From sequence record KJ019086.1: a stretch of DNA of 64,000 bases, one strand, 5' to 3'. Made by a program: the position numbers and the translations under genes. The notes beneath the pieces were generated by a model. It searched no databases. It had not been told where the DNA came from and saw only the letters and a program-made list of their open reading frames with translations. Of this stretch, positions 13,736-49,819 are shown piece by piece. How positions within the stretch are numbered: the first letter of the stretch is position 1; each line of letters opens with the position of its first letter.

Positions 13736-16525
13736 ATGGCAAGCATTCAATTCCCAGCAAATCCGAAAGTTGGTGATACTTACTACGACGTAGATACAAA
13801 TATAACTTACACCTGGGAGGGTGAATACTGGTTTGCAACAGGACCAGGCACAGGTATTGGTGCCACTGGAGCAACTGGAGCACAAGGAAATCAAGGTTCT
13901 AGTGGTGAAAAGGGTGAGCCAGGAACTCGCGGAATTAAAGGAGATACTGGATCTACTGGTTCTACCGGTCCCACAGGTCCTGGTGGTTTTATTGGATTAA
14001 CAGGTGCAACTGGTCCTCAAGGTTCTCCCGGTGGTGCTACCGGTGCTACAGGTAATATTGGTCCTTTAGGAACTACTGGTGCAACTGGTCCTGATGGTGC
14101 TAGTGGTGCTACAGGTATTCAGGGTCCTATTGGTACTCCAGGTGGTGCAACTGGCGCTACTGGTTTAGCTGGTCCTCCAGGAAATGTTGGTGCTACTGGT
14201 CCTCTCGGTCCTAATGGTACTCCAGGTGGTGCTACTGGTCCTCTTGGTCCTGTTGGTTCTACTGGAGCCACTGGTGCTGGTGCTACTGGCTCTGATGGTG
14301 CTACTGGTTCTACAGGTATTCAGGGACTACAAGGTTCCCCAGGTGGTGCAACTGGTGCTACTGGTATTGATGGTTTACTAGGTCCTATTGGTGCCACAGG
14401 TACTACAGGAGCTACCGGTGTTGATGGTCCTATTGGTGCCACAGGTACTACAGGTGCCACAGGTGAGACAGGTGATACAGGTTCAACCGGTGCTGCTGGT
14501 CCTACCGGTATTCCTGGAGCCACTGGTTTCACAGGTCCTGAAGGTGCTACGGGTTCCAAAGGTGATGAAGGTTCTACAGGTAGTACAGGTCCTCAAGGTT
14601 CTCCAGGTGGTGCCACTGGTGCTACTGGTGTTGATGGTCCTGTAGGTTCTACAGGTGCCACAGCTGCTACTGGTGCCACTGGTCCTGACGGTCCTACCGG
14701 TCCCGCAGGTCCTACAGGTTTATTAGGTGCCACTGGTGCTACTGGTGATGATGGTTCTACCGGAGCCACTGGTGCTACTGGTTTTGGTGCTACAGGTGCT
14801 GATGGTGCTACTGGTTCTACAGGTTCTACAGGTCCTGATGGTCCTCTTGGTTCTACTGGTGCCACTGGTATTGCAGGTGGTGTGAGTCATGTATGGTCAC
14901 CAGATGTTTCTATCCTAACTGCCAACAACTCTTTCCTATTCACCCACGATGTAGACGAAGATATTAAGATCCTAAAGATCTCCAAGTTTAGTTCAACATT
15001 CACCAATGAGGAGGCACTACTTAATAGTTTTGCAATCGGTGATTCACTTAGACTAACATCAGGTCCAGCAACATTCCAATATACTGTTAGAGCCAATGGT
15101 GGACTCACAGTATCATCTGGTGTTGACGTGTTTATGTTACTCGTCAGTGATGGTTTCTTAGCATCTGGTAGTGGAACACTCAATGGTTCAACAGTTGTTC
15201 TTCAACGTCCCACATCATCCACCTTCGCTACATTTAACTTCGGTGTATCCACTATCAACTGGCCTACTACTGATGGTGATGTAACTATTGACTATCCATT
15301 CCTAGTAAACAATGGTCCTAGGTATGTTGCATTCAATCAGAAGGATCTACTAGGTAGGGATGATGAGCAGTTCTTCTTTGAACCTTTAGTATCTACAGAC
15401 CTAAACTCATTCCAGTTCCAGGTTAAGACTACTAACTTCTTCAAATCAGAAATTGAAGGTGGTTACTACTATAGTGATATTGATGCCTATGTGTATCTAA
15501 CTGATATCACCGAACTATATTCAGATCCAAGTAATCCAGTAACCAGTGTGGGTTCACCTTGGAATGTTCAGGTTGTAGGTATTGCCTCCGCCATTCCTGG
15601 TGTTGCTGGTTCTCCAGGTGGTGCAACCGGTGCTACTGGTCCTGCTGGTCCTCCAAGTGGTGCAACTGGTGCTACAGGTGATCTTGGTCCTATTGGTCCC
15701 GGTGGTCCTACTGGTCCCGTTGGTGTTAACGGATCCCCAGGTTCACCCGGTGGTGCAACTGGTGCCACTGGTGCTGATGGTCCTGAAGGTGCTACTGGTT
15801 CTACAGGTGCAACAGGTGCATTCGTTACTGGTAGTAATCTTGTAGCAGGTATTATCACAGCCACCACATTCGATGGTGATGCTACATCATCTGATAAGAT
15901 TAAGACTAATCGGTCCAGCAGTGCGGCTGTTAACTATCTAACTTTCGTTTCTGATGATAACACTGGTGGTGCCGTTAGTGAAACCCTCAAGACAAACTTG
16001 AATGTAAGTTTCATTCCTTCTTCTGGTGATTTTATCGCTAGTAGGATTACAGCAAGTAACAACTTCTACCTGGGTGGTACTGAGGTCAATTCTTCAGCAT
16101 CTGAACTAAATGTGTTGGTTGGTGTTACTGACTTCTTAGATGAAGATAATATGGCATCCGATAGTCCTACGGCTATCCCATCACAACAATCAGTTAAGAG
16201 GTATGTTGACGCTAACGCTTTCTCTGGTATTACTACAGTTAGTATCCTAGTGGGCGCTGGTTCTAGTGATGTATACTTCGCAAGTTCTATTGTTCCAACT
16301 ACTAATGAGTCCATTGACTTGGGTAGTATTGACTATAAGTTCAGAGACCTCTACCTATCAGACACAACCATATATACTAACACTGGTGAACTTAGTGTAG
16401 GTTTGAATACCACAGCACCAACCGCAAAGGTTGTTCTTGGTCCAGCACTACAAACAATTGTTCAACAGTCCACTGATTTTGATGACTTTAAGATCAGAAT
16501 CGCAGCACAAAGTTGGGGTGGCTAA
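13736..16525 (+). CDS. Collagen-like tail fibre protein
   Basis: Two long interrupted Gly-X-Y tracts (GAT, GPx, GST), N-terminal FPANPKVGD...WEGEYW domain, C-terminal [11 protein letters not shown] fibre motif. Confidence 0.85.
13850..14880 (+). repeat. Collagen Gly-X-Y repeat tract 1 (approximate limits)
   Basis: Many GGTGCTACTGGT / GGTGCAACTGGT units; recurring [11 protein letters not shown]; second tract at about 15598-15820. Confidence 0.85.
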
Positions 16526-39241: not shown

Positions 39242-39402
39242 AAAGCAAGTATGTAGAGCTTATGTCCTTATGGAAAAGAGCTATGTCAATGAACAACAAA
39301 GAGGAAGCATTCCGTCTAAAGAGTGAGGCTAACCAACTCATTATAGAAGGGAAGGTAACAGATAGGGAGATAACAGCAGGTAAGTTTATTGGTTGGCGTT
39401 GA
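39238..39402 (+). CDS. Hypothetical protein (54 aa, not in ORF track)
   Basis: MKSKYVELMSLWKRAMS..., ATG overlaps upstream stop. Confidence 0.5.
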   Translation: MKSKYVELMSLWKRAMSMNNKEEAFRLKSEANQLIIEGKVTDREITAGKFIGWR

Positions 39403-39412
39403 TTGATATAAA

Positions 39413-39574
39413 CTGATTTTCTCATATTCAGGGAGCACGGGGTGACCTGTTCTCCCTTTCTTTATGCCGATATGGTTTTTTATGAGTTTGGGTCTAGTGC
39501 CTGACTGGGTTCTCAGGGGGCAACAAACCCCATATCACCCTGATACCACCCCCCTACACAAAACCACAAACCAT
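39413..39574 (+). repeat. ~160-bp non-coding block, copy A (partner at 49221-49381)
   Basis: Ungapped alignment of conserved motifs with copy B; abuts element 11. Confidence 0.8.
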
Positions 39575-39634
39575 TGTGCCAGTTGGACTAGTGGCACAAC
39601 CCCCCTAGGCAAACCCACAGCAGTCGTGTATTGT
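39575..39634 (+). promoter_or_regulatory. Element 11 (perfect palindrome)
   Basis: TGTGCCA-N10-TGGCACA; TAGGCA-N17-TATTGT. Confidence 0.85.
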
Positions 39635-39680
39635 ATAGAAGTGGAGGGGAGACCCACCACACACACCATTCACCAAAACA

Positions 39681-39863
39681 ATGACTGAACAATCAACATT
39701 CTCAGTTCATTATTCAAGTGATGAACACGATCAAATCTTAACTGAAACTGATTCTCTCTTTGAAGCAACTTGTGAGTACTACGAGATGATCGAAGATTTA
39801 GAAGATGATGAATGGATTTCAATCTACAATGAAGATTACAAAATCCTCAAGATTTCAGAATGA
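39681..39863 (+). CDS. Small acidic hypothetical protein
   Basis: Flanked by 20-bp direct repeats at 39644 and 39862. Confidence 0.6.
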   Translation: MTEQSTFSVHYSSDEHDQILTETDSLFEATCEYYEMIEDLEDDEWISIYNEDYKILKISE

Positions 39864-39898
39864 GGGGAGACCCACCACACAAACCACTAACTAACCAA

Positions 39899-40081
39899 AT
39901 GAACCGTATCCAAATCAACAAAGAACTCACACAACTTCGCGAAGAACGTGAAAAAGCACAGCGTGAAGTTGATAACATTCAAGCATGTATGAATGAGTTG
40001 ATGAAGAAGCGTAATGAGTTGGATATGGAACAAGAAGAGCGTTCAGGTCAGATGTTATTCGACCAGATGTTCGGAGGTTGA
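39899..40081 (+). CDS. Small coiled-coil protein
   Basis: Start moved to ATG 39899; ends LFDQMFGG. Confidence 0.65.
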   Translation: MNRIQINKELTQLREEREKAQREVDNIQACMNELMKKRNELDMEQEERSGQMLFDQMFGG

Positions 40082-40110
40082 GTTAGTAACACAAACTATT
40101 CACTAAAACA

Positions 40111-40356
40111 ATGAACACAACAACAATCAACATTCTCAAATCACTGGACATTCTTTCCACTTTGATTCAAGCATTCTATGAGATTGGATATGAACTTGGC
40201 ACCTTCTATCGCAACCATCTTCACTCACATGTGAAGTTTGCTATTGAATACTCTGGTCTTGTTATTCGTGAGACCTATGATAACCGTCAAGAGTATTTCA
40301 CAAAACTGAATAACATCCGCAACCAAGCTGGTTCATACTTTGTCTATAACGTGTGA
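40111..40356 (+). CDS. Hypothetical protein
   Basis: Stop TGA is in the left arm of element 12. Confidence 0.6.
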   Translation: MNTTTINILKSLDILSTLIQAFYEIGYELGTFYRNHLHSHVKFAIEYSGLVIRETYDNRQEYFTKLNNIRNQAGSYFVYNV

Positions 40357-40411
40357 CAGTTGAGGAAGTGGCACAAGCCCCCTAGGCAAACCCCTCAGGG
40401 GGTGCTATACT
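40352..40411 (+). promoter_or_regulatory. Element 12
   Basis: TGTGACA-N10-TGGCACA; TAGGCA-N17-TATACT. Confidence 0.9.
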
Positions 40412-40436
40412 ATATTCATACCAAAGGGAACCACCC

Positions 40437-40679
40437 ATGACTCATCTTTCCTTCACTCAGACCACACAAAACGCACTCCGTGAGTTAGATCGTTTAGAGG
40501 GAATTAAAGTTAGACTCGCTGGTTTGATTGTTGATCTTAAAGAGACACCATCAGCTAACTCTGAGACTTGGGTCAGGATGTATACTGATCGCCTCGTTTC
40601 TAATGTTATCCCAGCCATCAAGGAAGTTAAAGAATATCTCACTAGTCAGGATGCACTAGTTACCAAAGCATCCAACTGA
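40437..40679 (+). CDS. Hypothetical protein
   Basis: Between elements 12 and 13. Confidence 0.6.
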   Translation: MTHLSFTQTTQNALRELDRLEGIKVRLAGLIVDLKETPSANSETWVRMYTDRLVSNVIPAIKEVKEYLTSQDALVTKASN

Positions 40680-40727
40680 CAAACTGGCACAAGGGGGGTT
40701 GGCAAGACCCCCCAAAACCCCTATACT
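40668..40727 (+). promoter_or_regulatory. Element 13 (degenerate left arm)
   Basis: GCATCCA-N10-TGGCACA; TTGGCA-N17-TATACT. Confidence 0.8.
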
Positions 40728-40756
40728 AAACACATACCAAACAAAGGGAACAACCC

Positions 40757-41008
40757 ATGGCTCAACAAATCAAAATGAGAACACGAGTTTATTCTGATGT
40801 GACAGTAAGAGATCCACAGAAATATTATGATAGTGTGTTTAGGGGATATAATGAATACTGGACACTATTAGATTCAGAAGATCCACAATGTATCTTAGTT
40901 GAGACTACAGCACAATATGATCTAAACCCAGGGGGTTTGGATAACTTATACGACTTGATTACTCCTGAAATGTATCAGTCAACATCAAGGACTTATGTGA
41001 AAGTATAA
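40757..41008 (+). CDS. Hypothetical protein
   Basis: Between elements 13 and 14. Confidence 0.6.
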   Translation: MAQQIKMRTRVYSDVTVRDPQKYYDSVFRGYNEYWTLLDSEDPQCILVETTAQYDLNPGGLDNLYDLITPEMYQSTSRTYVKV

Positions 41009-41010
41009 GG

Positions 41011-41069
41011 TGTGACAGTTGGAGAAGTGGCACACGCTTCCCCGCAAACCACCCCACACCTGCTATACT
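41011..41069 (+). promoter_or_regulatory. Element 14 (non-consensus -35)
   Basis: TGTGACA-N10-TGGCACA; CCCGCA-N17-TATACT with TG extension. Confidence 0.8.
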
Positions 41070-41090
41070 ATATTCATACCAAAGGAACCA

Positions 41091-41258
41091 ATGTTTAAGT
41101 CACAAGTTCAGCGAATCGTCCGCGACACTGTTATTGGTCAGAGTGCTTCACTCACACGCGAAGAGAAGTGGTCCGTGTTCATCCAAGTCTGTGATGGTCT
41201 CTACAGTGACGGTCGCATCACACTCAAGCAACATGAAAGTTGGACATCCCCTTTCTGA
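41091..41258 (+). CDS. Hypothetical protein (55 aa)
   Basis: Start moved to ATG 41091; ends WTSPF. Confidence 0.65.
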   Translation: MFKSQVQRIVRDTVIGQSASLTREEKWSVFIQVCDGLYSDGRITLKQHESWTSPF

Positions 41259-41267
41259 TCACCCTGA

Positions 41268-41327
41268 TGTGACAGTTGGACTAGTGGCACAAGCCCCCTA
41301 GGCAAACCCCTCCACACCTGCTATACT
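41268..41327 (+). promoter_or_regulatory. Element 15
   Basis: TGTGACA-N10-TGGCACA; TAGGCA-N17-TATACT. Confidence 0.9.
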
Positions 41328-41351
41328 ATATTCATACCAAAGGAACCCAAC

Positions 41352-41549
41352 ATGGTTATCGACACTGACAACTATTTCACCACTGACAACGATCTTCTTC
41401 AGGCAGTATCACAATTCATTCTCTCACTGAATAACAAACTTATCAGTCAGAATGAGAACTTCCAGAGAGATACTGGTATCACTACTCTTGATAGTTTCAA
41501 TGAGTGTCTTATCGCTGAATGTGAAGAATACAAGTGTTATGATGTATAA
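41352..41549 (+). CDS. Hypothetical protein
   Basis: First ORF after element 15. Confidence 0.55.
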   Translation: MVIDTDNYFTTDNDLLQAVSQFILSLNNKLISQNENFQRDTGITTLDSFNECLIAECEEYKCYDV

Positions 41550-41686
41550 TGAGATTACTTATTCTCTTCTTGTTTGTCACTGGGTTCCTAGTCCTTAGAT
41601 TCGGAGTTGTCCCCCATGACAACTACGTATTCGATTGTGACAACATCCCACAAACAACAATCAACACCATCGCCTGTGGTGGTTAA
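41549..41686 (+). CDS. Small membrane protein (45 aa, not in ORF track)
   Basis: MRLLILFLFVTGFLVLRFG..., TAATG overlap. Confidence 0.45.
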   Translation: MRLLILFLFVTGFLVLRFGVVPHDNYVFDCDNIPQTTINTIACGG

Positions 41687-41709
41687 CACTCAACCTCAAC
41701 TATTTCATC

Positions 41710-42219
41710 ATGACTGATACTAACAAGGCTCAAACAATTGAAGAGCTGAAAGCTGAAGTTTCTGAACTGAAGGCAGCTAGGAAGGAAGAACTTCTGGCAC
41801 AGGCAGAACAACGAAAGCAAGATGAGGAACTTCGTTCACTCGAACTTCAGAAACAAGCTCTAGAAAGTGGTTCCCTCCCCTCCCCCACAGGCACACCTCA
41901 GTCACTACAACGTAGGATGACTGATATTGAAAACGCACGAGTTCGCACCTGGGCATATGCACTAGGAGCTTATTTCACTGGTCCTATCATGCCAGCTGTG
42001 GTGGCTAATCGTACTAAGAATTGGACACCTTTCTGGGCTGGATTGGGTCTTGGTATTGTATCTCTCCCCCTAGCATTTGCTGACCTTGGTATCATCTCCT
42101 CTGTTCCTGCAGCTGCTTTAGGAACTGTACTTCAGGCTCAGAAATCTAACAAGAAGCGTGAGGAGTTGGGTATTGTTTCCCCTGAGGAAGCTGACCTCCT
42201 CCGGTTCAAACAGTTCTGA
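41710..42219 (+). CDS. Coiled-coil + membrane hypothetical protein
   Basis: N-terminal coiled coil, two hydrophobic segments. Confidence 0.7.
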   Translation: MTDTNKAQTIEELKAEVSELKAARKEELLAQAEQRKQDEELRSLELQKQALESGSLPSPTGTPQSLQRRMTDIENARVRTWAYALGAYFTGPIMPAVVANRTKNWTPFWAGLGLGIVSLPLAFADLGIISSVPAAALGTVLQAQKSNKKREELGIVSPEEADLLRFKQF

Positions 42220-42224
42220 TTAAG

Positions 42225-42253
42225 TTACATCTCTGACCTCCTCAGTTTATACT
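42225..42253 (+). promoter_or_regulatory. Possible sigma70-like promoter
   Basis: TTACAT-N17-TATACT upstream of 42317. Confidence 0.4.
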
Positions 42254-42316
42254 GACGACTAAACCAACTGAGAGCGCTGGTCCCCTCTCACAACTCACCT
42301 TATCTAACTATCTACT

Positions 42317-42862
42317 ATGGCTATTTTCTCCGAAGAGTTCACCAACAGCATCAAGTCTAAAGTTGATTCAGCAAAGAACAAAATCTCTAACATCAACATT
42401 GGGAAACAGAGTGTCGTTGCTATTGTGGGAGGTACTTTAGTATTCTCAACCCTCGCAGTTGGTGCAGTTGGTGCTACAGTTCGTCAGGTTGTTGGTTCTA
42501 ACATTGGCAAAGAATGTAATGTGGCTGTTGGTGACTATGTGAGGTTGGCTGAAGTTCAAGAGACACAACTACTCAAGGCTAATGGATATATTCAATCGGT
42601 TCTAGAAAACCCTTGGAGCGCCCTAGTCCTTGGTGCTAGGATGTCTGAGATGGCAGACGAGATGAGTGCTCGTTGGGATGAGATTGGTAAAGCTGATGAC
42701 ACTTACCTTGAATCATGTGTTCTTGATGGTGACTTCAAGCGTTGGGTATTTGGTGGATATGTTCAAGAGGATCGTGAAGTGAAGTGGGAAGCTCAAGCTA
42801 ACCTAGAGGAAACTCGTCAGGTTACAGTTAAACTCTCTGAGCAACTAGATAGCCGGTACTGA
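42317..42862 (+). CDS. Membrane-anchored hypothetical protein
   Basis: TM segment near residues 33-55; stop abuts element 16. Confidence 0.7.
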   Translation: MAIFSEEFTNSIKSKVDSAKNKISNINIGKQSVVAIVGGTLVFSTLAVGAVGATVRQVVGSNIGKECNVAVGDYVRLAEVQETQLLKANGYIQSVLENPWSALVLGARMSEMADEMSARWDEIGKADDTYLESCVLDGDFKRWVFGGYVQEDREVKWEAQANLEETRQVTVKLSEQLDSRY

Positions 42863-42922
42863 TGTGACAGTTGAATAAGTGGCACAAGGGGGGTTCGCAA
42901 CCCTCCTTTTTTATGCTATACT
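42863..42922 (+). promoter_or_regulatory. Element 16
   Basis: TGTGACA-N10-TGGCACA; TTCGCA hairpin + T-run; N17; TATACT. Confidence 0.85.
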
Positions 42923-42946
42923 ATATTCATACCAAAGGAACCACAC

Positions 42947-43198
42947 ATGCCCAACCCTTTCGAGTCACTGACCTCTGAGGAGTTTTCGTTTCTATCTGAC
43001 GCATGTGCCCTCTCTGAGCAAATGTGGAGGGAGCGCTCCCGTTCTATAAAAGCAGGGGAGCCACGTTGGTTTCTAGATGGTGAGCCCATGTTCACTGAAG
43101 AGGAATGTCGCTCAGAAATGAAACGATACCGTGAGCTACAGAAGCGAGTTTCCTGGTTCTCCCTCACACCAGAAGAGATGGAGCGTGTGACAGTCTAG
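42947..43198 (+). CDS. Hypothetical protein
   Basis: Ends RVTV-stop inside element 17. Confidence 0.6.
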   Translation: MPNPFESLTSEEFSFLSDACALSEQMWRERSRSIKAGEPRWFLDGEPMFTEEECRSEMKRYRELQKRVSWFSLTPEEMERVTV

Positions 43199-43245
43199 AA
43201 ACTGGCACAACCCCCCTAGACAAACCCCTCTTTTTCTGCTATACT
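43186..43245 (+). promoter_or_regulatory. Element 17
   Basis: TGTGACA-N10-TGGCACA; TAGACA-N17-TATACT. Confidence 0.9.
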
Positions 43246-43267
43246 ATTCACATACAGACAAAACACT

Positions 43268-44173
43268 ATGGCTAAGAATCTCCACCTAGAACACCCAGAA
43301 GACCAGCTCCTCACTGGTGACGATAGTGTCATCAGTTGGTTCTACGCAACCTCTAGTTCCTCTGTGAAGATGGATGGTAGTCCTGCAATAGTTTGGGGAA
43401 CTAACCCAGAAAATGGTGAGTTCTTTGTGGGAACTAAGTCAGTGTTCAATAAGAAGAAGATCAAGATATGTTATACCCAGAAAGATATTACAACCTTATA
43501 TGGTCATCAACCTAATGTGGTTGCTATCCTTACCGCCTGTTTGGCATATCTCCCCCGCACTGATGTAGTGTATCAGGGTGACTTTATTGGGTTTGGTGGT
43601 GATGATACCTACACCCCAAATACTGTCACCTATGTGTTCCCTGAGGTTATTCAGGAACGTGTTATCATGGCACCCCATACTTTCTATGTGGGTGAGAAGA
43701 TGACTGAGATGGATGCCTTCCCTATCTTATCCACTCTAGATGAATCACGTCATGTTCACTTTGTTCAACCCACTGTAGATATCTACAACGATAAGGCAAA
43801 CTGGGAAGAGTTTCAGCGTTGTTATGATGAAGTGAAAGAGGTAGATGGTTTCCTAGGTATCAAGAGAGCCGCAGAGGCAAAGATCATCATCAACCAGTTA
43901 CTTCGTAATAACAAGTATCTCAGTATCCCACTATTAACTGAGATCTTTGGTACTAAAGAGATGGCTATTCTCTACACCTTCGCACTACATGAGAAGTTCA
44001 GAATCCTTGAGGATGCTATCTACTACGATGGTCCTCAGTGTTTGTTAGATGGTGATGATGTAGAGTCTGAGGGTATTGTTAGAACCAACCAGTTTGGTTC
44101 TATGAAACTCGTCAATCGTTATATCTTCAGTGTAGCAAACTTCAACAACAGCAAGTTCAGAGAGGTGAAGTAA
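43268..44173 (+). CDS. Phage protein with ligase/capping-type nucleotidyltransferase motifs
   Basis: HLEHPED, VKMDGSPA (KxDG), YQGDF, EGIV, MKLVNR. Confidence 0.6.
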   Translation: MAKNLHLEHPEDQLLTGDDSVISWFYATSSSSVKMDGSPAIVWGTNPENGEFFVGTKSVFNKKKIKICYTQKDITTLYGHQPNVVAILTACLAYLPRTDVVYQGDFIGFGGDDTYTPNTVTYVFPEVIQERVIMAPHTFYVGEKMTEMDAFPILSTLDESRHVHFVQPTVDIYNDKANWEEFQRCYDEVKEVDGFLGIKRAAEAKIIINQLLRNNKYLSIPLLTEIFGTKEMAILYTFALHEKFRILEDAIYYDGPQCLLDGDDVESEGIVRTNQFGSMKLVNRYIFSVANFNNSKFREVK

Positions 44174-44367
44174 TGATTGACTTCGATACTCTAACTCACG
44201 AAGAACTAGAGAGACTATCTGATGACTGTGAAGACTTTCTTCTTCATAGAAATATACCTCTAAGGTCACATTCCTATGAGAATATCATCAGACATGCTAT
44301 TTTGGAAGGATACCAACTATCTCGGTATCCTGGTGTGACACCTGGGAAACTGGCACAAGACCCCTAG
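44173..44367 (+). CDS. Hypothetical protein
   Basis: Reads through the palindrome of element 18; stop is the TAG of the -35 box. Confidence 0.6.
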   Translation: MIDFDTLTHEELERLSDDCEDFLLHRNIPLRSHSYENIIRHAILEGYQLSRYPGVTPGKLAQDP

Positions 44368-44393
44368 ACAAACCAGACCACACCTGCTATACT
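44334..44393 (+). promoter_or_regulatory. Element 18
   Basis: TGTGACA-N10-TGGCACA; TAGACA-N17-TATACT. Confidence 0.9.
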
Positions 44394-44417
44394 ATATTCA
44401 TACCAAACAAACAACCC

Positions 44418-44675
44418 ATGCAACTCACAGCACAACACGCAAACATCGTTGTTGATTTCTACCCTGTAAAGTATTCTGATGGTACTATCAGTGAGCGTCT
44501 AATGTATAAAACAGTGAAGTTCGTTGGTTCACCTCCATCCAAGTCATATATCAACAAAGAATCCTTCGAAAAGGAAGTTGATTCCCGTGTTTATGGTTTT
44601 GGTTATGAGGTGACTGCTCTACATACAGAGCCACAACTCTTCAACTCTGCACTTGTTCAAACTCGCTGGTCATAA
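44418..44675 (+). CDS. Hypothetical protein
   Basis: MQLTAQHANIVVDFYPVKY... Confidence 0.65.
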   Translation: MQLTAQHANIVVDFYPVKYSDGTISERLMYKTVKFVGSPPSKSYINKESFEKEVDSRVYGFGYEVTALHTEPQLFNSALVQTRWS

Positions 44676-44677
44676 GT

Positions 44678-44869
44678 ATGAATTACACACAACGGTTGTA
44701 TGAGGCTGAACAACTCTCCACTATGTGTTACCTTTGTAATATTGACCTAACGGAATGTATTACAGAGGTTTCTGATTACCTAGAGTTGGGTTATAATGAC
44801 AGTAAAGATATTGCCTCAGGTACCTATAAAGTTCTCTCATCAATGAATCCCCATGAGCCTATCAAATGA
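44678..44869 (+). CDS. Hypothetical protein
   Basis: 63-aa ORF in operon. Confidence 0.5.
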   Translation: MNYTQRLYEAEQLSTMCYLCNIDLTECITEVSDYLELGYNDSKDIASGTYKVLSSMNPHEPIK

Positions 44870-45212
44870 ATCAATGAGCAAGCTTGTCGATAACATTGCC
44901 TCTGATGTTTTCCATCTTATTGCTTCTGACCCATACTATACTGAGACCTTTATGAATCTATTACCCGGTGCAATCACTGAGGTTATTGGTGATACTTCCC
45001 CTGAACTTATTGGTGAGTTGGGTGGTAGAATCATGGACAGAGTTGGGGTTGATGGATGTGATGTCAATTCCGATAAAGTATGGGAGCAAAGGTATAGATC
45101 TCTGTTTCACTATGTTAAAAAGAACTACGCATCAGAGTATGTTGATGGGGCAGAATATGGTCAGATGGGTACAATGTATGGAGATTTTACTAGCACCTCG
45201 GAGTTAGACTGA
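44853..45212 (+). CDS. Hypothetical acidic protein
   Basis: 119-aa ORF in operon. Confidence 0.6.
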   Translation: MSLSNESMSKLVDNIASDVFHLIASDPYYTETFMNLLPGAITEVIGDTSPELIGELGGRIMDRVGVDGCDVNSDKVWEQRYRSLFHYVKKNYASEYVDGAEYGQMGTMYGDFTSTSELD

Positions 45213-45415
45213 TGCCATCGTTCACGCCATATGGAAGATACCAACTGACTTCAGTTCAGGTGGATTTAATCCTACACTGCATGAGTGAGTATAAAGGACT
45301 CACCACACAGGAAGATAACGAGAGGAGAAAGATTGTAGAAGAACTTAGCAACTCTTTTACTGATACTGACCCATCAGATCCTTACCTAGATCATTACTAT
45401 ACTTGTGACTATTGA
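45212..45415 (+). CDS. Hypothetical protein
   Basis: TGATG coupling. Confidence 0.55.
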   Translation: MPSFTPYGRYQLTSVQVDLILHCMSEYKGLTTQEDNERRKIVEELSNSFTDTDPSDPYLDHYYTCDY

Positions 45416-45789
45416 TGACTGAACTCTTTCCATTTCCTGGTTTCCAGTATAGATTAGACTATACAGATAACGGAACCCCAAAGTTATGTTGGTTTGAATG
45501 TGAGGATCATTTATCCAAACATATATCTAGATACAAACTAACAAAGAAAACTCACAGGGCAAAGATCCAAACCCCTCGCGGTGTGAAGTTGGCGAAAGAC
45601 CCGCTAGCCACCAAACCAGCCAGGAAACGGAAAACCACCCCCCAGAAACCCAGTGATACCAAGGGTTCTAAAGTATCAAAAACACAAAAATCCATAACGA
45701 AGGGCAAGAAGGTAGAAACACCCACCCCCTCCCGTAGGAAAGCGAAGAAATCAGTTTTTAGTACCGTGGAGGACTTCTTTACCAAATGA
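45412..45789 (+). CDS. Hypothetical protein with Lys/Pro-rich C-terminal tail
   Basis: FPFPGFQYRL...CWFECEDHL N-domain; K/R/T/P-rich tail. Confidence 0.7.
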   Translation: MMTELFPFPGFQYRLDYTDNGTPKLCWFECEDHLSKHISRYKLTKKTHRAKIQTPRGVKLAKDPLATKPARKRKTTPQKPSDTKGSKVSKTQKSITKGKKVETPTPSRRKAKKSVFSTVEDFFTK

Positions 45790-45977
45790 TTGTACCTAAC
45801 GAATCAGAATTGCTTCACCTAAAGATACAAGCAGCAATGAGGGAGAATGCTTTTCCTCACAATCAGTTGATGTATCTGGGTGAGAGAGAAGATCAACACT
45901 GGTATCTAATAGCAGGAAAACATGAAGTGCCAGTAACAATGTTAGAAGGATTTGAGAGGATTGATGATGAAGAATGA
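45786..45977 (+). CDS. Hypothetical protein
   Basis: LHLKIQAAMRE...HWYLIAGKHEVPV. Confidence 0.6.
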   Translation: MIVPNESELLHLKIQAAMRENAFPHNQLMYLGEREDQHWYLIAGKHEVPVTMLEGFERIDDEE

Positions 45978-46115
45978 TAAACTAAAGACATATCACCTAA
46001 AGGTAAAGTTTATGGATGAACTAACCTATGGTCAGTTTATTACAGCACCCAGTGAAGAGGAAGCCATGAGACTTTTCATTGAGGAGTATATCTACATCGC
46101 GTCTGAGAGAGAAAC

Positions 46116-46307
46116 ATGAACTATAATAAGGTGGCTGAGGCTCTTCATGAAGAAGTAACTGATTATATCTTTAAGAACCATTATCACCATATCAAATCAG
46201 TTTATACTGATGTTGTTGAGGAATACATAGAGAGGGAAGTGGGTCCTCTAACTGAGAAGAACCACAAACAACTAGTTAAACAACTCGTTAAATTCTACAT
46301 CTCCTGA
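46116..46307 (+). CDS. Hypothetical protein
   Basis: 63-aa ORF. Confidence 0.55.
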   Translation: MNYNKVAEALHEEVTDYIFKNHYHHIKSVYTDVVEEYIEREVGPLTEKNHKQLVKQLVKFYIS

Positions 46308-46321
46308 TTGAGCTTTTCGTT

Positions 46322-46531
46322 ATGTCTTCACCATCAGCATTCACACCAGCATTAGGTCTAGAAGTTGAATACAGGGGCTTTGTGGGTTATATCAAGTTTA
46401 TAGATGAAGAATATTTAACAGTGTGTGTGAAGAAGAAAGAGCACCAAATGTTTGGTGATGTTTGTATGGTTGTGTATCCAAGTCAGTGGGAACACATTAA
46501 ACTAATGGGCGGACCTCACAGAGACCGCTAG
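46322..46531 (+). CDS. Hypothetical protein (SH3-like pattern)
   Basis: GLEVEY-GFVGYIKFI-EEYLTVC; stop is left arm of element 19. Confidence 0.6.
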   Translation: MSSPSAFTPALGLEVEYRGFVGYIKFIDEEYLTVCVKKKEHQMFGDVCMVVYPSQWEHIKLMGGPHRDR

Positions 46532-46588
46532 GACAGCTGAGGAAGTGGCACAAGGGGGCTAGGCAAGCCCCCTTTGTCGTGCTATACT
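46529..46588 (+). promoter_or_regulatory. Element 19
   Basis: TAGGACA-N10-TGGCACA; TAGGCA hairpin; N17; TATACT. Confidence 0.85.
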
Positions 46589-46615
46589 ATATTCATACCA
46601 AAGGGAACCACCCCC

Positions 46616-46762
46616 ATGACTATCAACTTTAAAAGTCTATTCATCACCACTTGTGTGGGTCTCACCCTAATACTAGGGAGCTTCGCTTTTACCAGTGATT
46701 ATGGTACTGAGACCGGGCGTGGCGAACAGACTGAGAGCCCTTACTACGGACCCGCTTTCTAA
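46616..46762 (+). CDS. Small secreted/membrane protein (48 aa)
   Basis: Start moved to ATG 46616; MTINFKSLFITTCVGLTLILGSFAFT. Confidence 0.55.
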   Translation: MTINFKSLFITTCVGLTLILGSFAFTSDYGTETGRGEQTESPYYGPAF

Positions 46763-46807
46763 AGTGGCACAAGGGGGGTTGGCAATACCCTCTACACCTG
46801 CTATACT
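46748..46807 (+). promoter_or_regulatory. Element 20 (left arm lost)
   Basis: TGGCACA at 46765; TTGGCA-N17-TATACT. Confidence 0.8.
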
Positions 46808-46830
46808 AAACACATACCAAACAAAGAACC

Positions 46831-47007
46831 ATGTTCAAACTTCAACTCAAGTGGCAGAAAGAAGGTGAGTGGATTGATACAGTATACGCTCCTACAGAAT
46901 ACGCAACAGCTTTCTTTCGTTGGAGACAGTACCAAGAGCTTTGGGGTGATACTCACACCTATCGCCTCCTCGATGTGACACCTCAGGAAGTGGCACAAGC
47001 CTCCTAG
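46831..47007 (+). CDS. Hypothetical protein (58 aa, not in ORF track)
   Basis: MFKLQLKWQKEGEWIDTVY...; reads through element 21 palindrome. Confidence 0.55.
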   Translation: MFKLQLKWQKEGEWIDTVYAPTEYATAFFRWRQYQELWGDTHTYRLLDVTPQEVAQAS

Positions 47008-47033
47008 GCAAACCACCCCACACCTGCTATACT
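46974..47033 (+). promoter_or_regulatory. Element 21
   Basis: TGTGACA-N10-TGGCACA; TAGGCA-N17-TATACT. Confidence 0.9.
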
Positions 47034-47056
47034 AAACACATACCAAACAAAGAACC

Positions 47057-47338
47057 ATGAATTTCAAGTCCTTCCTTCTTTCCTCACTCATCGTCACCAC
47101 CGGGCTAGTAGCCTCAGCACCAGGAGCCAAAGCCGCTGAATGTTTCATGGGTGATGGCTATCGGGTTTGTATGGAGAGCTTAGGCATGAATCGTTGGGAA
47201 GTATCCTTCGAGAACAACCATGGCTCAGAGTTTATGGAGGTTCAGTGTATTGGCAAGAGTGTGAGTGATTGGACATCACGAGGTGATTTGAGTCAGTCTG
47301 AGGCAAACTATCTCGCAGAACAGTTCTGTTCCTGGTAA
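47057..47338 (+). CDS. Secreted 4-Cys protein
   Basis: Signal peptide MNFKSFLL...APGAKA; similar to 50744-51061. Confidence 0.7.
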   Translation: MNFKSFLLSSLIVTTGLVASAPGAKAAECFMGDGYRVCMESLGMNRWEVSFENNHGSEFMEVQCIGKSVSDWTSRGDLSQSEANYLAEQFCSW

Positions 47339-47371
47339 GATATAACAACTAACCAACTCTACACTATTATC

Positions 47372-47530
47372 ATGTTTGTATCCTTCACTGAAATCCAAGA
47401 CTACATTCGCGAAGACCAATACACATATAGTGAGCGTCAGTTCCGCTCACGCAAATACAACAAAAACGAACGTCGTTATCAGCGTCGTCAGAAGCAACAA
47501 CAAAGAGAACGCAACTACGATAGCGTGTGA
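47372..47530 (+). CDS. Small R/Q-rich protein (52 aa, not in ORF track)
   Basis: MFVSFTEIQDYIREDQY...RERNYDSV; stop in element 22. Confidence 0.55.
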   Translation: MFVSFTEIQDYIREDQYTYSERQFRSRKYNKNERRYQRRQKQQQRERNYDSV

Positions 47531-47584
47531 CAGTTGGAGAAGTGGCACACACTTCTCCACAAACCCCCCAGGGGGTGCTATACT
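47526..47584 (+). promoter_or_regulatory. Element 22 (non-consensus -35)
   Basis: TGTGACA-N10-TGGCACA; TCCACA-N17-TATACT. Confidence 0.8.
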
Positions 47585-47609
47585 ATATTCATACCAAAGG
47601 GAACCACCC

Positions 47610-47834
47610 ATGACCACCACCACTCCAAACCTCTACAACGAAGCTATCCGTCGTTTGGCTGACGGTTTCTCCTCAGAGTTCGCTGAGTTCTGTGCAGGAG
47701 ACGAGAGGGTTCATGAGATCATGATGGACCTCGCTAGTGAGTTTGTAGAAACCAATATCCCTGTAGTGAGTGAGGAGAGCCAAACCGATGTGGCATCTGA
47801 GCTCCTCATGAGTATCACAGTCACCAAGGTGTGA
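47610..47834 (+). CDS. Hypothetical acidic protein
   Basis: Start moved to ATG 47610; stop in element 23. Confidence 0.65.
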   Translation: MTTTTPNLYNEAIRRLADGFSSEFAEFCAGDERVHEIMMDLASEFVETNIPVVSEESQTDVASELLMSITVTKV

Positions 47835-47889
47835 CAGTCTAGGAACTGGCACAAGGGGGGTTGGCAACACCCCCCAAAACCTCTATACT
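47830..47889 (+). promoter_or_regulatory. Element 23
   Basis: TGTGACA-N10-TGGCACA; TTGGCA hairpin; N17; TATACT. Confidence 0.9.
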
Positions 47890-47914
47890 AAACACATACC
47901 AAACAACCCAGACC

Positions 47915-48463
47915 ATGAACTTCAAGAAACTCCTCCTTTCCACTCTCGCACTTGGTTCAGTTGTAGCCCCTTCAGCAAACGCTGGTTATACCTATGAGGG
48001 TTATCACTTGATGGATGGTTCTGACTTTCCTGGTTATGAGAGAGTGGCAACCCCAATGATTCAGGCTCTCAATGAAATGGGTGTTCCTGTTGTTGATGGT
48101 GGTAAGAATAACGTAGAAATGTGTATTCCTGAAGAGGAAAAGATGACTCTTGGTTTCTACGTTCCAGCATCCAATGTGATGGTTATCTGTACCAAGTCTA
48201 TCCCAGGTTGGCTTCAGATGGAGACACTTACCCACGAAACAGTTCATGTCATCCAAGACGCACGGGCTGGTATTGATAACGGAGATTTGGGAGAGGCACC
48301 AACCGATCACCTTATCACCCTCGCTAATGAGATGGATCCCGATAAGATGAATATCATCTACAGCCTCTACGATGAGTCTGATTACGCAGTAGAGATTGAA
48401 GCTTTCTACTTTGAAACAGAACCCCAGGTGGTTATGAATGAGATCCAACGTTGGGCATTCTGA
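47915..48463 (+). CDS. Secreted HExxH zinc metallopeptidase-like protein
   Basis: Start moved to ATG 47915; signal peptide ending SANA; THETVHVIQ and downstream EIEA glutamate. Confidence 0.65.
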   Translation: MNFKKLLLSTLALGSVVAPSANAGYTYEGYHLMDGSDFPGYERVATPMIQALNEMGVPVVDGGKNNVEMCIPEEEKMTLGFYVPASNVMVICTKSIPGWLQMETLTHETVHVIQDARAGIDNGDLGEAPTDHLITLANEMDPDKMNIIYSLYDESDYAVEIEAFYFETEPQVVMNEIQRWAF

Positions 48464-48505
48464 TACACTAAGTAACACTCACCAAACACACTAACTAACA
48501 ACATC

Positions 48506-48892
48506 ATGGGCACACGTTCACGCATCGGTTATCAACTTCCAACTGGCAATATCGTTTCTGTGTATCATCATTGGGATTCCTATCCTACGTGGTTGGGTAA
48601 GAGACTCACCAAAAACTATATCACTGATAAAACTATCACCGAACTGATTGATGGTGGTGATATGTCATCTATCGAGAGTAATCGCGACTGGGATCTTAAT
48701 GAAGTTGCCCCACATGTTCAGTATTATTCACAACGTGGTGACACTGGATGTGAACCCCTCCTTCACAAAAACCAAAGAGAGTTTATCAAAACCACTGTAG
48801 ACTGTTGGGGTGAGTATTCCTACCTATACAGGAATGGACGTTGGTTCTGTTATGATGAGAAGGGTAAGTCTGTTTCACTGAAGAACTTATGA
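48506..48892 (+). CDS. Conserved-looking phage hypothetical protein
   Basis: MGTRSRIG...SVYHHWDSYPTWLG...LIDGGDMS...EYSYLY. Confidence 0.75.
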   Translation: MGTRSRIGYQLPTGNIVSVYHHWDSYPTWLGKRLTKNYITDKTITELIDGGDMSSIESNRDWDLNEVAPHVQYYSQRGDTGCEPLLHKNQREFIKTTVDCWGEYSYLYRNGRWFCYDEKGKSVSLKNL

Positions 48893-49224
48893 TTAGCAAA
48901 CTGTTTTCACTATCTCTTGTTCTTGTGGGTTCTATCTTACCCGCACAGGCATACCCCAATATCGTATATTGGGAACGCATTGATTGTAACCTCATCACCG
49001 AAACTATCCAGAAGTGTGATAGGTACAATGGGCAGAATGGAGTTTTCATCGAATCATACTATCTGGACATATACACAAACGAACATAGCTTTATAGATCC
49101 ACGAGGACCTGAAATAGTTGTACCTGATGTAATAGAAGAAGAGACACTAGATGATATCCAACCTGATGTAGAATACAACGAACCGATAACAACAACAGAC
49201 CCACTCCTGAATGATAGTTACTGA
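48889..49224 (+). CDS. Secreted hypothetical protein
   Basis: Signal peptide ending PAQA; acidic tail. Confidence 0.55.
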   Translation: MISKLFSLSLVLVGSILPAQAYPNIVYWERIDCNLITETIQKCDRYNGQNGVFIESYYLDIYTNEHSFIDPRGPEIVVPDVIEEETLDDIQPDVEYNEPITTTDPLLNDSY

Positions 49225-49381
49225 TTTTTCCATATTCCTGTCGGCAACCACCTCCTATCATACCCCCTGCCAAACCGATATGGTTTTTTCACCTTTCCCG
49301 TCTAGTGGCTCACTGGTGTCTCAGCGAGGCACAAATGAGATTTCACCCCCATACCCCCAGACAGAGCAAAACTCATAACCA
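49221..49381 (+). repeat. ~160-bp non-coding block, copy B (partner at 39413-39574)
   Basis: Same motif order and spacing as copy A; abuts element 24. Confidence 0.8.
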
Positions 49382-49440
49382 TGTGACAGTTGGATTAGTG
49401 GCACACGAAAGCCCGCAAACCCCTCAGGGGGTGCTATACT
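49382..49440 (+). promoter_or_regulatory. Element 24 (non-consensus -35)
   Basis: TGTGACA-N10-TGGCACA; CCCGCA-N17-TATACT. Confidence 0.85.
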
Positions 49441-49462
49441 AAACCCATACACAACAAAACCA

Positions 49463-49819
49463 ATGATCTACTCTATCACTCACCAGGAGACTGGCATTAC
49501 GTATTCAGTTAGCACTGAAGATATTCGTAAAGTTGCTAACATCCTCCCAATGAACTCTGAGGAGTTGGCTGACATGATGACAGGTCTGAATTGTGACTCA
49601 TATGCAGATATGGCAGAAGAGTATATTGAAGAAGTTGCGGATATGTATGATGATGTGACACTGGCAACTGATAAGTTTATGAGTAGCACTGATGAAAGGG
49701 CACAAACAACGTTCGCCTACTATCGTATCATGAACTGTGATAACTCTGATGAAGTGACTACACAATATTGGCGTGATGACGCTATGGCTATGATCACTGA
49801 CTACAATGATCGCAAATGA
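49463..49819 (+). CDS. Hypothetical acidic protein
   Basis: First ORF after element 24. Confidence 0.6.
   Translation: MIYSITHQETGITYSVSTEDIRKVANILPMNSEELADMMTGLNCDSYADMAEEYIEEVADMYDDVTLATDKFMSSTDERAQTTFAYYRIMNCDNSDEVTTQYWRDDAMAMITDYNDRK

Follow-up and report, generated by a model that had tools for sequence, protein, structure and literature searches.

What is the role of a non-coding stretch of about 160 nucleotides (nt) that occurs twice in a phage genome and keeps its short motifs at fixed distances from one another, the segments between them being free to differ? The question is raised by the window analysed here, a 64,000-nt stretch of DNA corresponding to bases 1-64000 of Synechococcus phage ACG-2014f isolate Syn7803US17 (KJ019086.1; 100% identity and the same coordinates by BLAST), a T4-like cyanomyovirus (Kyanoviridae, Atlauavirus) of marine Synechococcus with a genome of 226,849 bp. 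From about 27 to 56 kb the window holds an early-type run of small open reading frames (ORFs), all on the forward strand, and two of its intergenic gaps house the two copies, A and B, of the block in question. An earlier note on this DNA had taken the fixed spacing as the mark of a helically phased nucleoprotein site, such as an origin, an attachment (att) site or an enhancer. The answer that we favour, and hold tentatively, is that the block serves as a portable cassette at gene boundaries, specific to this lineage and present in two copies, and represents a rare second class beside the ~29 canonical cassettes of the same region, which resemble the PeSL terminator/promoter cassettes of T4-type phages.

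Both copies stand where they had first been placed (A at 39413-39574, B at 49221-49381) and align without gaps up to a downstream palindrome, immediately before which A is longer by 1 nt. In the ungapped comparison 97 of 161 positions are identical: the named motif blocks total 78/90 (15/17, 15/15, 21/25, 5/5, 11/13 and 11/15), and the spacers between them 19/71 (10/37, 2/10, 2/6, 2/7 and 3/11), which is chance level, 26% being expected from composition. The core and CCGATATGGTTTTTT are each found twice in the window against 0-0.12 occurrences expected. Homology begins 14 nt farther upstream than first described, at 39399 and 49207; the whole module is ~175 bp long, and the gaps that hold the two copies, 278 and 238 nt, are the longest in the region, the remaining ones measuring ~80 nt. 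As to the spacing, called identical in the earlier note, the ~75 nt from ATATGG to ATACC are indeed free of indels in 19 distinct sequences of the block, but 1-nt indels do occur elsewhere: some strains have them in the 5' hairpin segment, and KJ019148 has one in its C-run, so that length changes in the spacers of homologues, which the note had named as telling against its idea, exist on a minor scale. The variable segments, described there as unrelated, do show chance-level identity between A and B, but the 37-nt spacers are homologous, copy A having GGGGTGACCT in common, in register, with metagenomic B orthologues.

We propose that such a cassette would act in four consecutive parts (Table 1). 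A cluster of stop codons would close all three frames; a hairpin based on CCATAT/ATATGG and followed by a U-tract would, judging from its predicted fold, end or attenuate transcription from upstream genes; a protein would recognise the invariant 25-nt core in a sequence-specific manner and set expression of the downstream gene; and a G-poor, unstructured leader would end at the start codon of that gene. The fixed spacing would then stem from common descent of the two copies, combined with selection on short islands and with a hairpin interior that is free in sequence and not in size, the remaining spacers being leftovers between islands under selection, in two copies that descend from one ancestral cassette. 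The short shared islands would furthermore make the cassette a recombination linker, with genes and whole cassettes inserted or removed at its two edges.

At the 5' edge, the conserved motif TGAwTGATAnnnACTGA precedes both blocks and places stops in the three forward frames within 17 nt, an arrangement that may act as a translational insulator. The first two named motif blocks, together with the 37 nt between them, make up a hairpin and U-tract with a conserved CCATAT/ATATGG stem base and T6 immediately 3'. Four interiors fold strongly, namely the type of the window's A (-19.6 kcal/mol, z -3.9), the L007/L008 type (-15.8 to -22.8 kcal/mol, z -3.5 to -4.6) and those of two metagenomic contigs, L018 (-24.8 kcal/mol, z -5.8) and L019 (-26.7 kcal/mol, z -5.8), in both of which a continuous long stem ends exactly at U6, and all four are unrelated or barely related in sequence. 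Being a hairpin interior, this segment behaves as a spacer of fixed length without fixed sequence, and terminator function of the 5' third is a prediction from these folds. In copy A only (39469-39480 / 39525-39536), GATATGG is also complementary to a CCATATC 3' of the core, with which it could form an alternative stem enclosing the core; this CCATATC arm is kept in all A variants and absent from B.

The core itself, GTCTAGTGnCTnACTGGnnTCTCAG, is identical across the 19 sequences except at its four n positions, and is followed at fixed distances by smaller islands (AA, CACyC, ATAC and AAAC). Relative to the window's B, contig L019 retains 25/25 core positions and 29/31 of the next segment, with third codon positions of the adjacent gene 92 at 73% identity, and L018 retains 22/25 core positions, with those third positions at about 61%. 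Since the core is better conserved than the third codon positions next to it, purifying selection must act on its sequence as such, and the invariance of the stems between old paralogues suggests recognition by a protein rather than structure alone. Such a protein could meet the core as DNA, in the form of an operator for a weak, activator-dependent promoter, or as nascent RNA, in the form of a hairpin or pseudoknot.

At the 3' edge the strains differ in what separates the block from the next gene. In insertion-free copies of B (18 of the 44 strain records and contigs L015 and L017-L019) the block leads directly into the start codon of gene 92 (...CATACCACCCCTCTGACCAAAACGGATC ATG; window position 49816); the window and 25 further records have a unit of 460 bp that parts CATACC from this start codon. 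At its 3' end, ancestral B (ATACCACCCCTCTGACCAAAAC) is closer to A (ATACCACCCCCCTACACAAAAC) than the window's B is, and from this likeness and the abutting gene 92 ATG it follows that the original block began with the stop cluster, continued with hairpin, core and leader, and ended at the ATG. The palindrome, which the earlier note regarded as fused to the block, does follow both window copies and in both has the subtype GTTGGAyTAG, which is also present at 41268 with no block; however, it is missing after copy B from 18/44 strain records, and at least at B, where it came with the later insertion, it is secondary. The leader is G-poor and unstructured like those of the canonical cassettes, with whose predicted start region it has CATACCA in common.

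Table 1. Parts of the two copies of the block and of the segments that follow them (positions in the window)
Feature	Position	Strand	Description
A stop cluster	39400..39416	+	TGA, TGA, TAA, TGA; three forward frames closed; first TGA is the gene 60 stop
A terminator-like module	39417..39481	+	Fold -19.6 kcal/mol, z -3.9
A module parts	39417-39429; 39430-39457; 39470-39481		T-run and CTCATATTC (39417-39429); interrupted hairpin AGGGAGCACGGG/CCTGTTCTCCCT (39430-39457); T-rich tail; ATATGG and T6 (39470-39481)
A core	39492..39516	+	GTCTAGTGCCTGACTGGGTTCTCAG; contains inverted repeat of 5 bp with 5-nt loop, CTAGT-GCCTG-ACTGG
A leader-like segment	39517..39574	+	G-poor, C/A-rich; islands AA, CACCC, ATACC, AAAAC
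A downstream canonical-type cassette	39575..39634	+	Palindrome TGTGCCA-N10-TGGCACA 39575-39598; -35 TAGGCA 39606-39611; -10 TATTGT 39629-39634; serves gene 61
B stop cluster	49208..49224	+	TGA, TGA, TAG, TGA; three frames closed; last TGA is the gene 90 stop
B terminator-like module, degenerate	49225..49289	+	Fold -9.1 kcal/mol, z -2.5
B module parts	49230-49235; 49278-49283; 49284-49289		Outer stem CCATAT (49230-49235) / ATATGG (49278-49283); T6 (49284-49289); interior pairing GGCA/TGCC only
B core	49300..49324	+	GTCTAGTGGCTCACTGGTGTCTCAG
B leader-like part common to all B orthologues	49325..49355	+	Ends CATACC; weak promoter-like GAGGCA-18-CATACC from 49326
B insertion	49356..49815	+	Alternative leader end; palindrome 49382-49405; promoter (-10 TATACT 49435-49440); gene 91

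The distribution of the element is narrow. An nhmmer profile built from the 19 variants finds exactly two copies, A and B, in the complete 226,849-bp genome, and in the phage collection the block is restricted to 45 ACG-2014f records, with A in 45/45 and B in 44/45. The search for further copies suggested in the earlier note thus yielded none elsewhere in the genome, and a metagenome scan added five marine contigs, all carrying B orthologues, of which L018 and L019 are clearly more divergent. The record without B, KJ019123, is an isolate deposited as a complete genome, in which B was lost together with genes 89-93 in a single deletion (L013 9093-9884); copy B and its neighbours are therefore dispensable for a phage isolated in culture. 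No block is present in the related phage S-CAM7, at the viral-contig loci with ~60%-identical relatives of gene 92 (where gene 92 is translationally coupled to a different upstream gene), or in viral contigs beyond one ACG-2014f genome, three viral-contig matches to a 17-nt core pattern being chance occurrences inside unrelated coding sequence. The core is likewise absent from bacteria and archaea, searched as one representative genome for each of 185,579 species. A literature search found no description of this element, and a transcript look-up by contig returned genome records only. The element is real, previously undescribed, lineage-restricted and non-coding.

Comparison between strains shows how the gene-boundary cassette has moved. 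The proteins flanking A are unrelated to those flanking B, on which ground segmental duplication was rejected, and the non-coding module must therefore have been copied or moved by itself. As the earlier note had proposed to look for, strain breakpoints do fall at the block edges: some strains carry a free-standing HNH endonuclease gene immediately 5' of A, where it has entered between the block and the homologue of gene 60, and at the 3' end of B a unit made of a cassette and gene 91 has been inserted. These breakpoints, marked by cassette exchange guided by homology and by the free-standing HNH gene, are of the type seen at PeSLs and are not site-specific crossovers. Hairpin "alleles" are moreover common to both loci. 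The interior of A in KJ019100 and that of B in the window are about 54% identical by hand count, and GGGGTGACCT is shared between A and the B copies of L018 and L019; it follows from such interiors that the A and B loci have exchanged these segments. The HNH gene lies at L011 690-1157 in KJ019100 and at L012 685-1152 in KJ019148, with its own TGTTATAAT promoter and hairpin, and in both of these strains the hairpin interior of block A is swapped for a B-like version.

PeSL cassettes of T4-type phages and recombination within them have been documented (Arbiol et al. 2010, PMC2839356; Comeau et al. 2014, PMC4122927), and they offer the closest comparison. The canonical cassettes of ACG-2014f, ~29 copies of a ~75-bp palindrome and sigma-70-type promoter located between small early ORFs (window 27439-55615), consist of the palindrome TGTGACA-N10-TGGCACA, a -35 element TAGGCA/TTGGCA, a 17-nt spacer, a -10 element TATACT and a leader ATATTCATACCAAAGGA...ATG; in about half of them the -35 sits in the loop of a G6/C6 hairpin that is followed by T6, and S-CAM7 also has canonical palindrome/promoter cassettes (L024). 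They form a dense PeSL-like system in a cyanophage and are, by analogy, the cyanophage counterpart of the PeSL cassettes (PMC2839356, PMC4122927). The block is unrelated to them in sequence. It nevertheless shares with PeSL cassettes its position as an intergenic composite element between small ORFans in a hyperplastic early region, its succession of stem-loop, T-run, leader and ATG with ~100+ bp conserved, and the gene insertion, deletion and replacement junctions at or in it between unrelated flanking genes. Unlike them, it has no detectable strong sigma-70 promoter, is present in two copies and not in dozens, and includes an invariant 25-nt core with no PeSL counterpart; in addition, the PeSL literature examined (PMC2839356, PMC4122927) holds no cyanophage PeSLs, whereas the block is in a cyanophage. 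The boundary cassette is thus mobile and PeSL-like in its evolutionary behaviour, and departs from PeSL cassettes in its copy number and in lacking a strong internal promoter. A similar balance applies to intrinsic (Rho-independent) terminators, with which the block shares a hairpin directly followed by a U-tract and a stem kept while its sequence changes between strains, but from which it differs in its long, interrupted stems and in the sequence-invariant stem base CCATAT/ATATGG, which ordinary terminators do not need.

Several results weigh against the boundary-cassette reading. A simple terminator consensus scan passes over both copies on account of their interrupted stems, and hairpins are degenerate in the B copies of ACG-2014f isolates, the window's included, and in the HNH-associated A copies (z about -0.4 to -3.3, most near -2). 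A sigma-70 consensus scan finds no promoter in the block, an nhmmer profile of the 29 canonical cassettes matches neither copy, and the middle (TGTTATAAT) and late (TATAAATA) promoter motifs of the phage are absent from it. A position weight matrix of the cassette -35/-10 elements scores B weakly (GAGGCA-18-CATACC, rank 306 of 226,809, top 0.13%) and A at background, and the -10-like xATACC lacks the final T in 19/19 sequences, with no TAnnnT conserved. Two copies per genome, finally, do not make a general promoter class. There is no credible sigma-70 promoter in the block, and the possibility that it is a degenerate canonical cassette was rejected on the missing profile match and on the weak (B) and background (A) matrix scores. 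A promoter is logically attractive, as gene 92 needs expression 3' of the strong L018/L019 hairpin, and the core, ~38-63 nt 5' of the transcription start that xATACC would predict, lies roughly in the place of the canonical palindrome; sequence support for a promoter is poor, however.

Among the alternatives, a possible but unlikely one is that the core works as an RNA operator, folding into a compact H-type pseudoknot (S1 CUAGU/ACUGG, S2 sCUs/CAGn, loops of 1 and 5 nt) that would be the nucleation point for a phage RNA-binding protein on the unstructured, C/A-rich leader and would regulate how the gene that follows is translated or processed. A second helix, 90-93:104-107, would convert the invariant 5-bp hairpin into such a pseudoknot, all invariant core nucleotides having a place in S1, S2 or a loop; in alignment A2 pair 90:107 is CG, GC, GU or AU depending on the sequence, four standard forms that fit the + strand only, and 94% of cells are paired; and G-poor sequence of ~55 nt separates the core from the ATG. 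This is, however, the single covarying pair, a helix of pseudoknot quality arises in 26% of column-permuted alignments, and pair 93:104 is C-C in every B copy. RNAalifold retains just the 5-bp hairpin CUAGU-GnCUn-ACUGG (-3.9 kcal/mol), and covariation in the block is not significant with 19 sequences, which are too few for a powered R-scape test. Folding of the whole block as RNA is ordinary (z -0.9 and -0.3), and neither the window as a whole against Rfam 15 at the gathering score nor the two blocks at E<10 give a relevant match; no tRNA or tmRNA was found in the window. If the upstream hairpin terminates efficiently, furthermore, little RNA would reach the core. We regard the pseudoknot as a lead rather than a finding. 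An alternative helix, 91-97:104-110, was set aside (79% of cells paired, no compensatory change); it is mutually exclusive with the pseudoknot and is the minimum-energy fold in several B variants. A -1 frameshift site formed by UUUUUUA 5' of the putative pseudoknot was likewise rejected, as no long ORF leads into it, about half of the strains have a disrupted heptamer (GGAUUUUU) and the spacer measures 11 nt.

The operator of T4 gene 32 and the nut sites of lambda nonetheless bear some resemblance to the core, with a small hairpin or pseudoknot, a 1-nt first loop and a long unstructured leader to the start codon, and nutL and nutR also come as two copies per genome with conserved boxes and variable spacers of equal length. 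The block differs from both in that it has no homologous sequence, shows no significant covariation and follows a terminator-like hairpin instead of a promoter, and its downstream genes encode unrelated small proteins and not a single-strand-binding protein. Less probable still is that the core (39494-39517 / 49302-49325) represents a new small cyanophage cis-regulatory RNA, an H-type pseudoknot or 15-nt boxB-sized hairpin that would recruit a phage early protein onto the long, unstructured C/A-rich leader; were it so, it would bring gene-32-style translational control or nut-style modification of host RNA polymerase to two points in a 25-kb terminator-rich early region.

Improbable in our view, and lower in rank, is that both copies are decaying relics of an old duplicated terminator/promoter cassette, nonfunctional and with islands kept alike by short-tract gene conversion. 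Crippled promoter-like elements, the degenerate B hairpin and the loss of B in one isolate would all fit such decay, and exchange does take place, given the hairpin alleles and the GTTCTCAG haplotype common to both loci. Within each lineage, however, including the divergent metagenomic orthologues, the islands are conserved above neighbouring synonymous sites, polymorphisms like the W of ATATGGWTTTTT show no concerted pattern within a genome, and conversion alone would not yield the same sharp island boundaries in both lineages.

The mechanism put forward in the earlier note, a replication origin, recombination/attachment site or upstream enhancer built from phased protein sites, ranks just behind as a doubtful proposition. 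Invariant islands at fixed spacing, an imperfect inverted repeat CTAGT-N5-ACTGG in the core, indel junctions at the block edges and the HNH endonuclease gene beside A in some strains would all be at home in such a DNA site. Nevertheless, the blocks contain no iterons or internal direct repeats and no AT-rich unwinding element, their 3' half being C/A-rich; cumulative GC skew rises monotonically through 39-49 kb with no inflection at either copy; and no integrase or recombinase is annotated in 36-53 kb, where only the free-standing HNH gene is found, beside A in some strains. The island centre-to-centre distances (53, 30, 21, 16, 25 and 20.5 bp) are not consistently multiples of the 10.5-bp helical turn, B can be dispensed with in KJ019123, and the G-U form of pair 90:107 together with the hairpin interiors points to constraint on the transcribed strand. 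An origin or att site is thus not supported. What stands of the earlier description is a non-coding block, neither a known nor a clearly covarying RNA, with sequence-constrained islands at fixed spacing.

On one coding point that description erred, since the two copies do share an open frame: in A and B alike, the frame CCG ATA TGG has no stop from position 55 of the block to the end of the palindrome (ORFs 39464-39688 and 49305-49442). Variable sites over the 19 distinct sequences nevertheless fall 19/14/13 by codon phase, with no third-position excess in any frame, and a 1-nt insertion in KJ019148 breaks the long frame, which therefore carries no coding signal. Far less probable than any of the above is that this frame, which would moreover cross the next promoter, is a translated small gene, or that a short leader peptide (MxFxxFxSSx...) is made from the invariant ATG of ATATGG, despite three synonymous changes in its first seven codons (TAT/TAC, CCT/CCC and TTC/TTT), given that this mini-ORF differs in length between copies (A, 10 codons; L018, 15; the window's B, 33) and that past codon 10 all B-haplotype differences are non-synonymous.

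Early regions of T4-like cyanophages hold many unknown small genes whose expression and shuffling are poorly understood. The element would give such a region a second type of boundary cassette, the edges of which are also the places where genes have been gained and lost in 45 co-occurring strains. Should a phage protein bind the core, the element would open a way into the regulation of early genes in marine cyanophages and provide a testable case of gene shuffling by cassettes in phages other than those of enterobacteria. The scope is narrow, with two copies per genome in a single phage lineage, and the importance is moderate to low, except if the core turns out to be an activator site or a protein-binding RNA of a new kind.

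Elsewhere in the genome, at 140330-141022 (L021 26330-27022) and thus outside the window, a 230-aa truncated sigma-70-family protein comprises regions 2 and 4 only, its region 2 being nearest to cyanobacterial RpoD; the phage has gp55 and gp33 besides. This protein could define a phage-specific promoter class, and no link between it and the block was found. Within the window, a large structural gene, probably encoding a fibre protein, carries long collagen-like Gly-X-Y repeats with a 9-nt period (13850-15830). Downstream of copy A, gene 61 (39681-39863) is an indel between two 40-nt leader repeats, at 39644-39684 and 39862-39902, and in KJ019103 and KJ019111, which are without gene 61, gene 62 directly follows the promoter of block A. 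The annotated start of gene 62 at 39860 is probably wrong, as strains lacking gene 61 begin at the ATG equivalent to 39899 (MNRIQ...).

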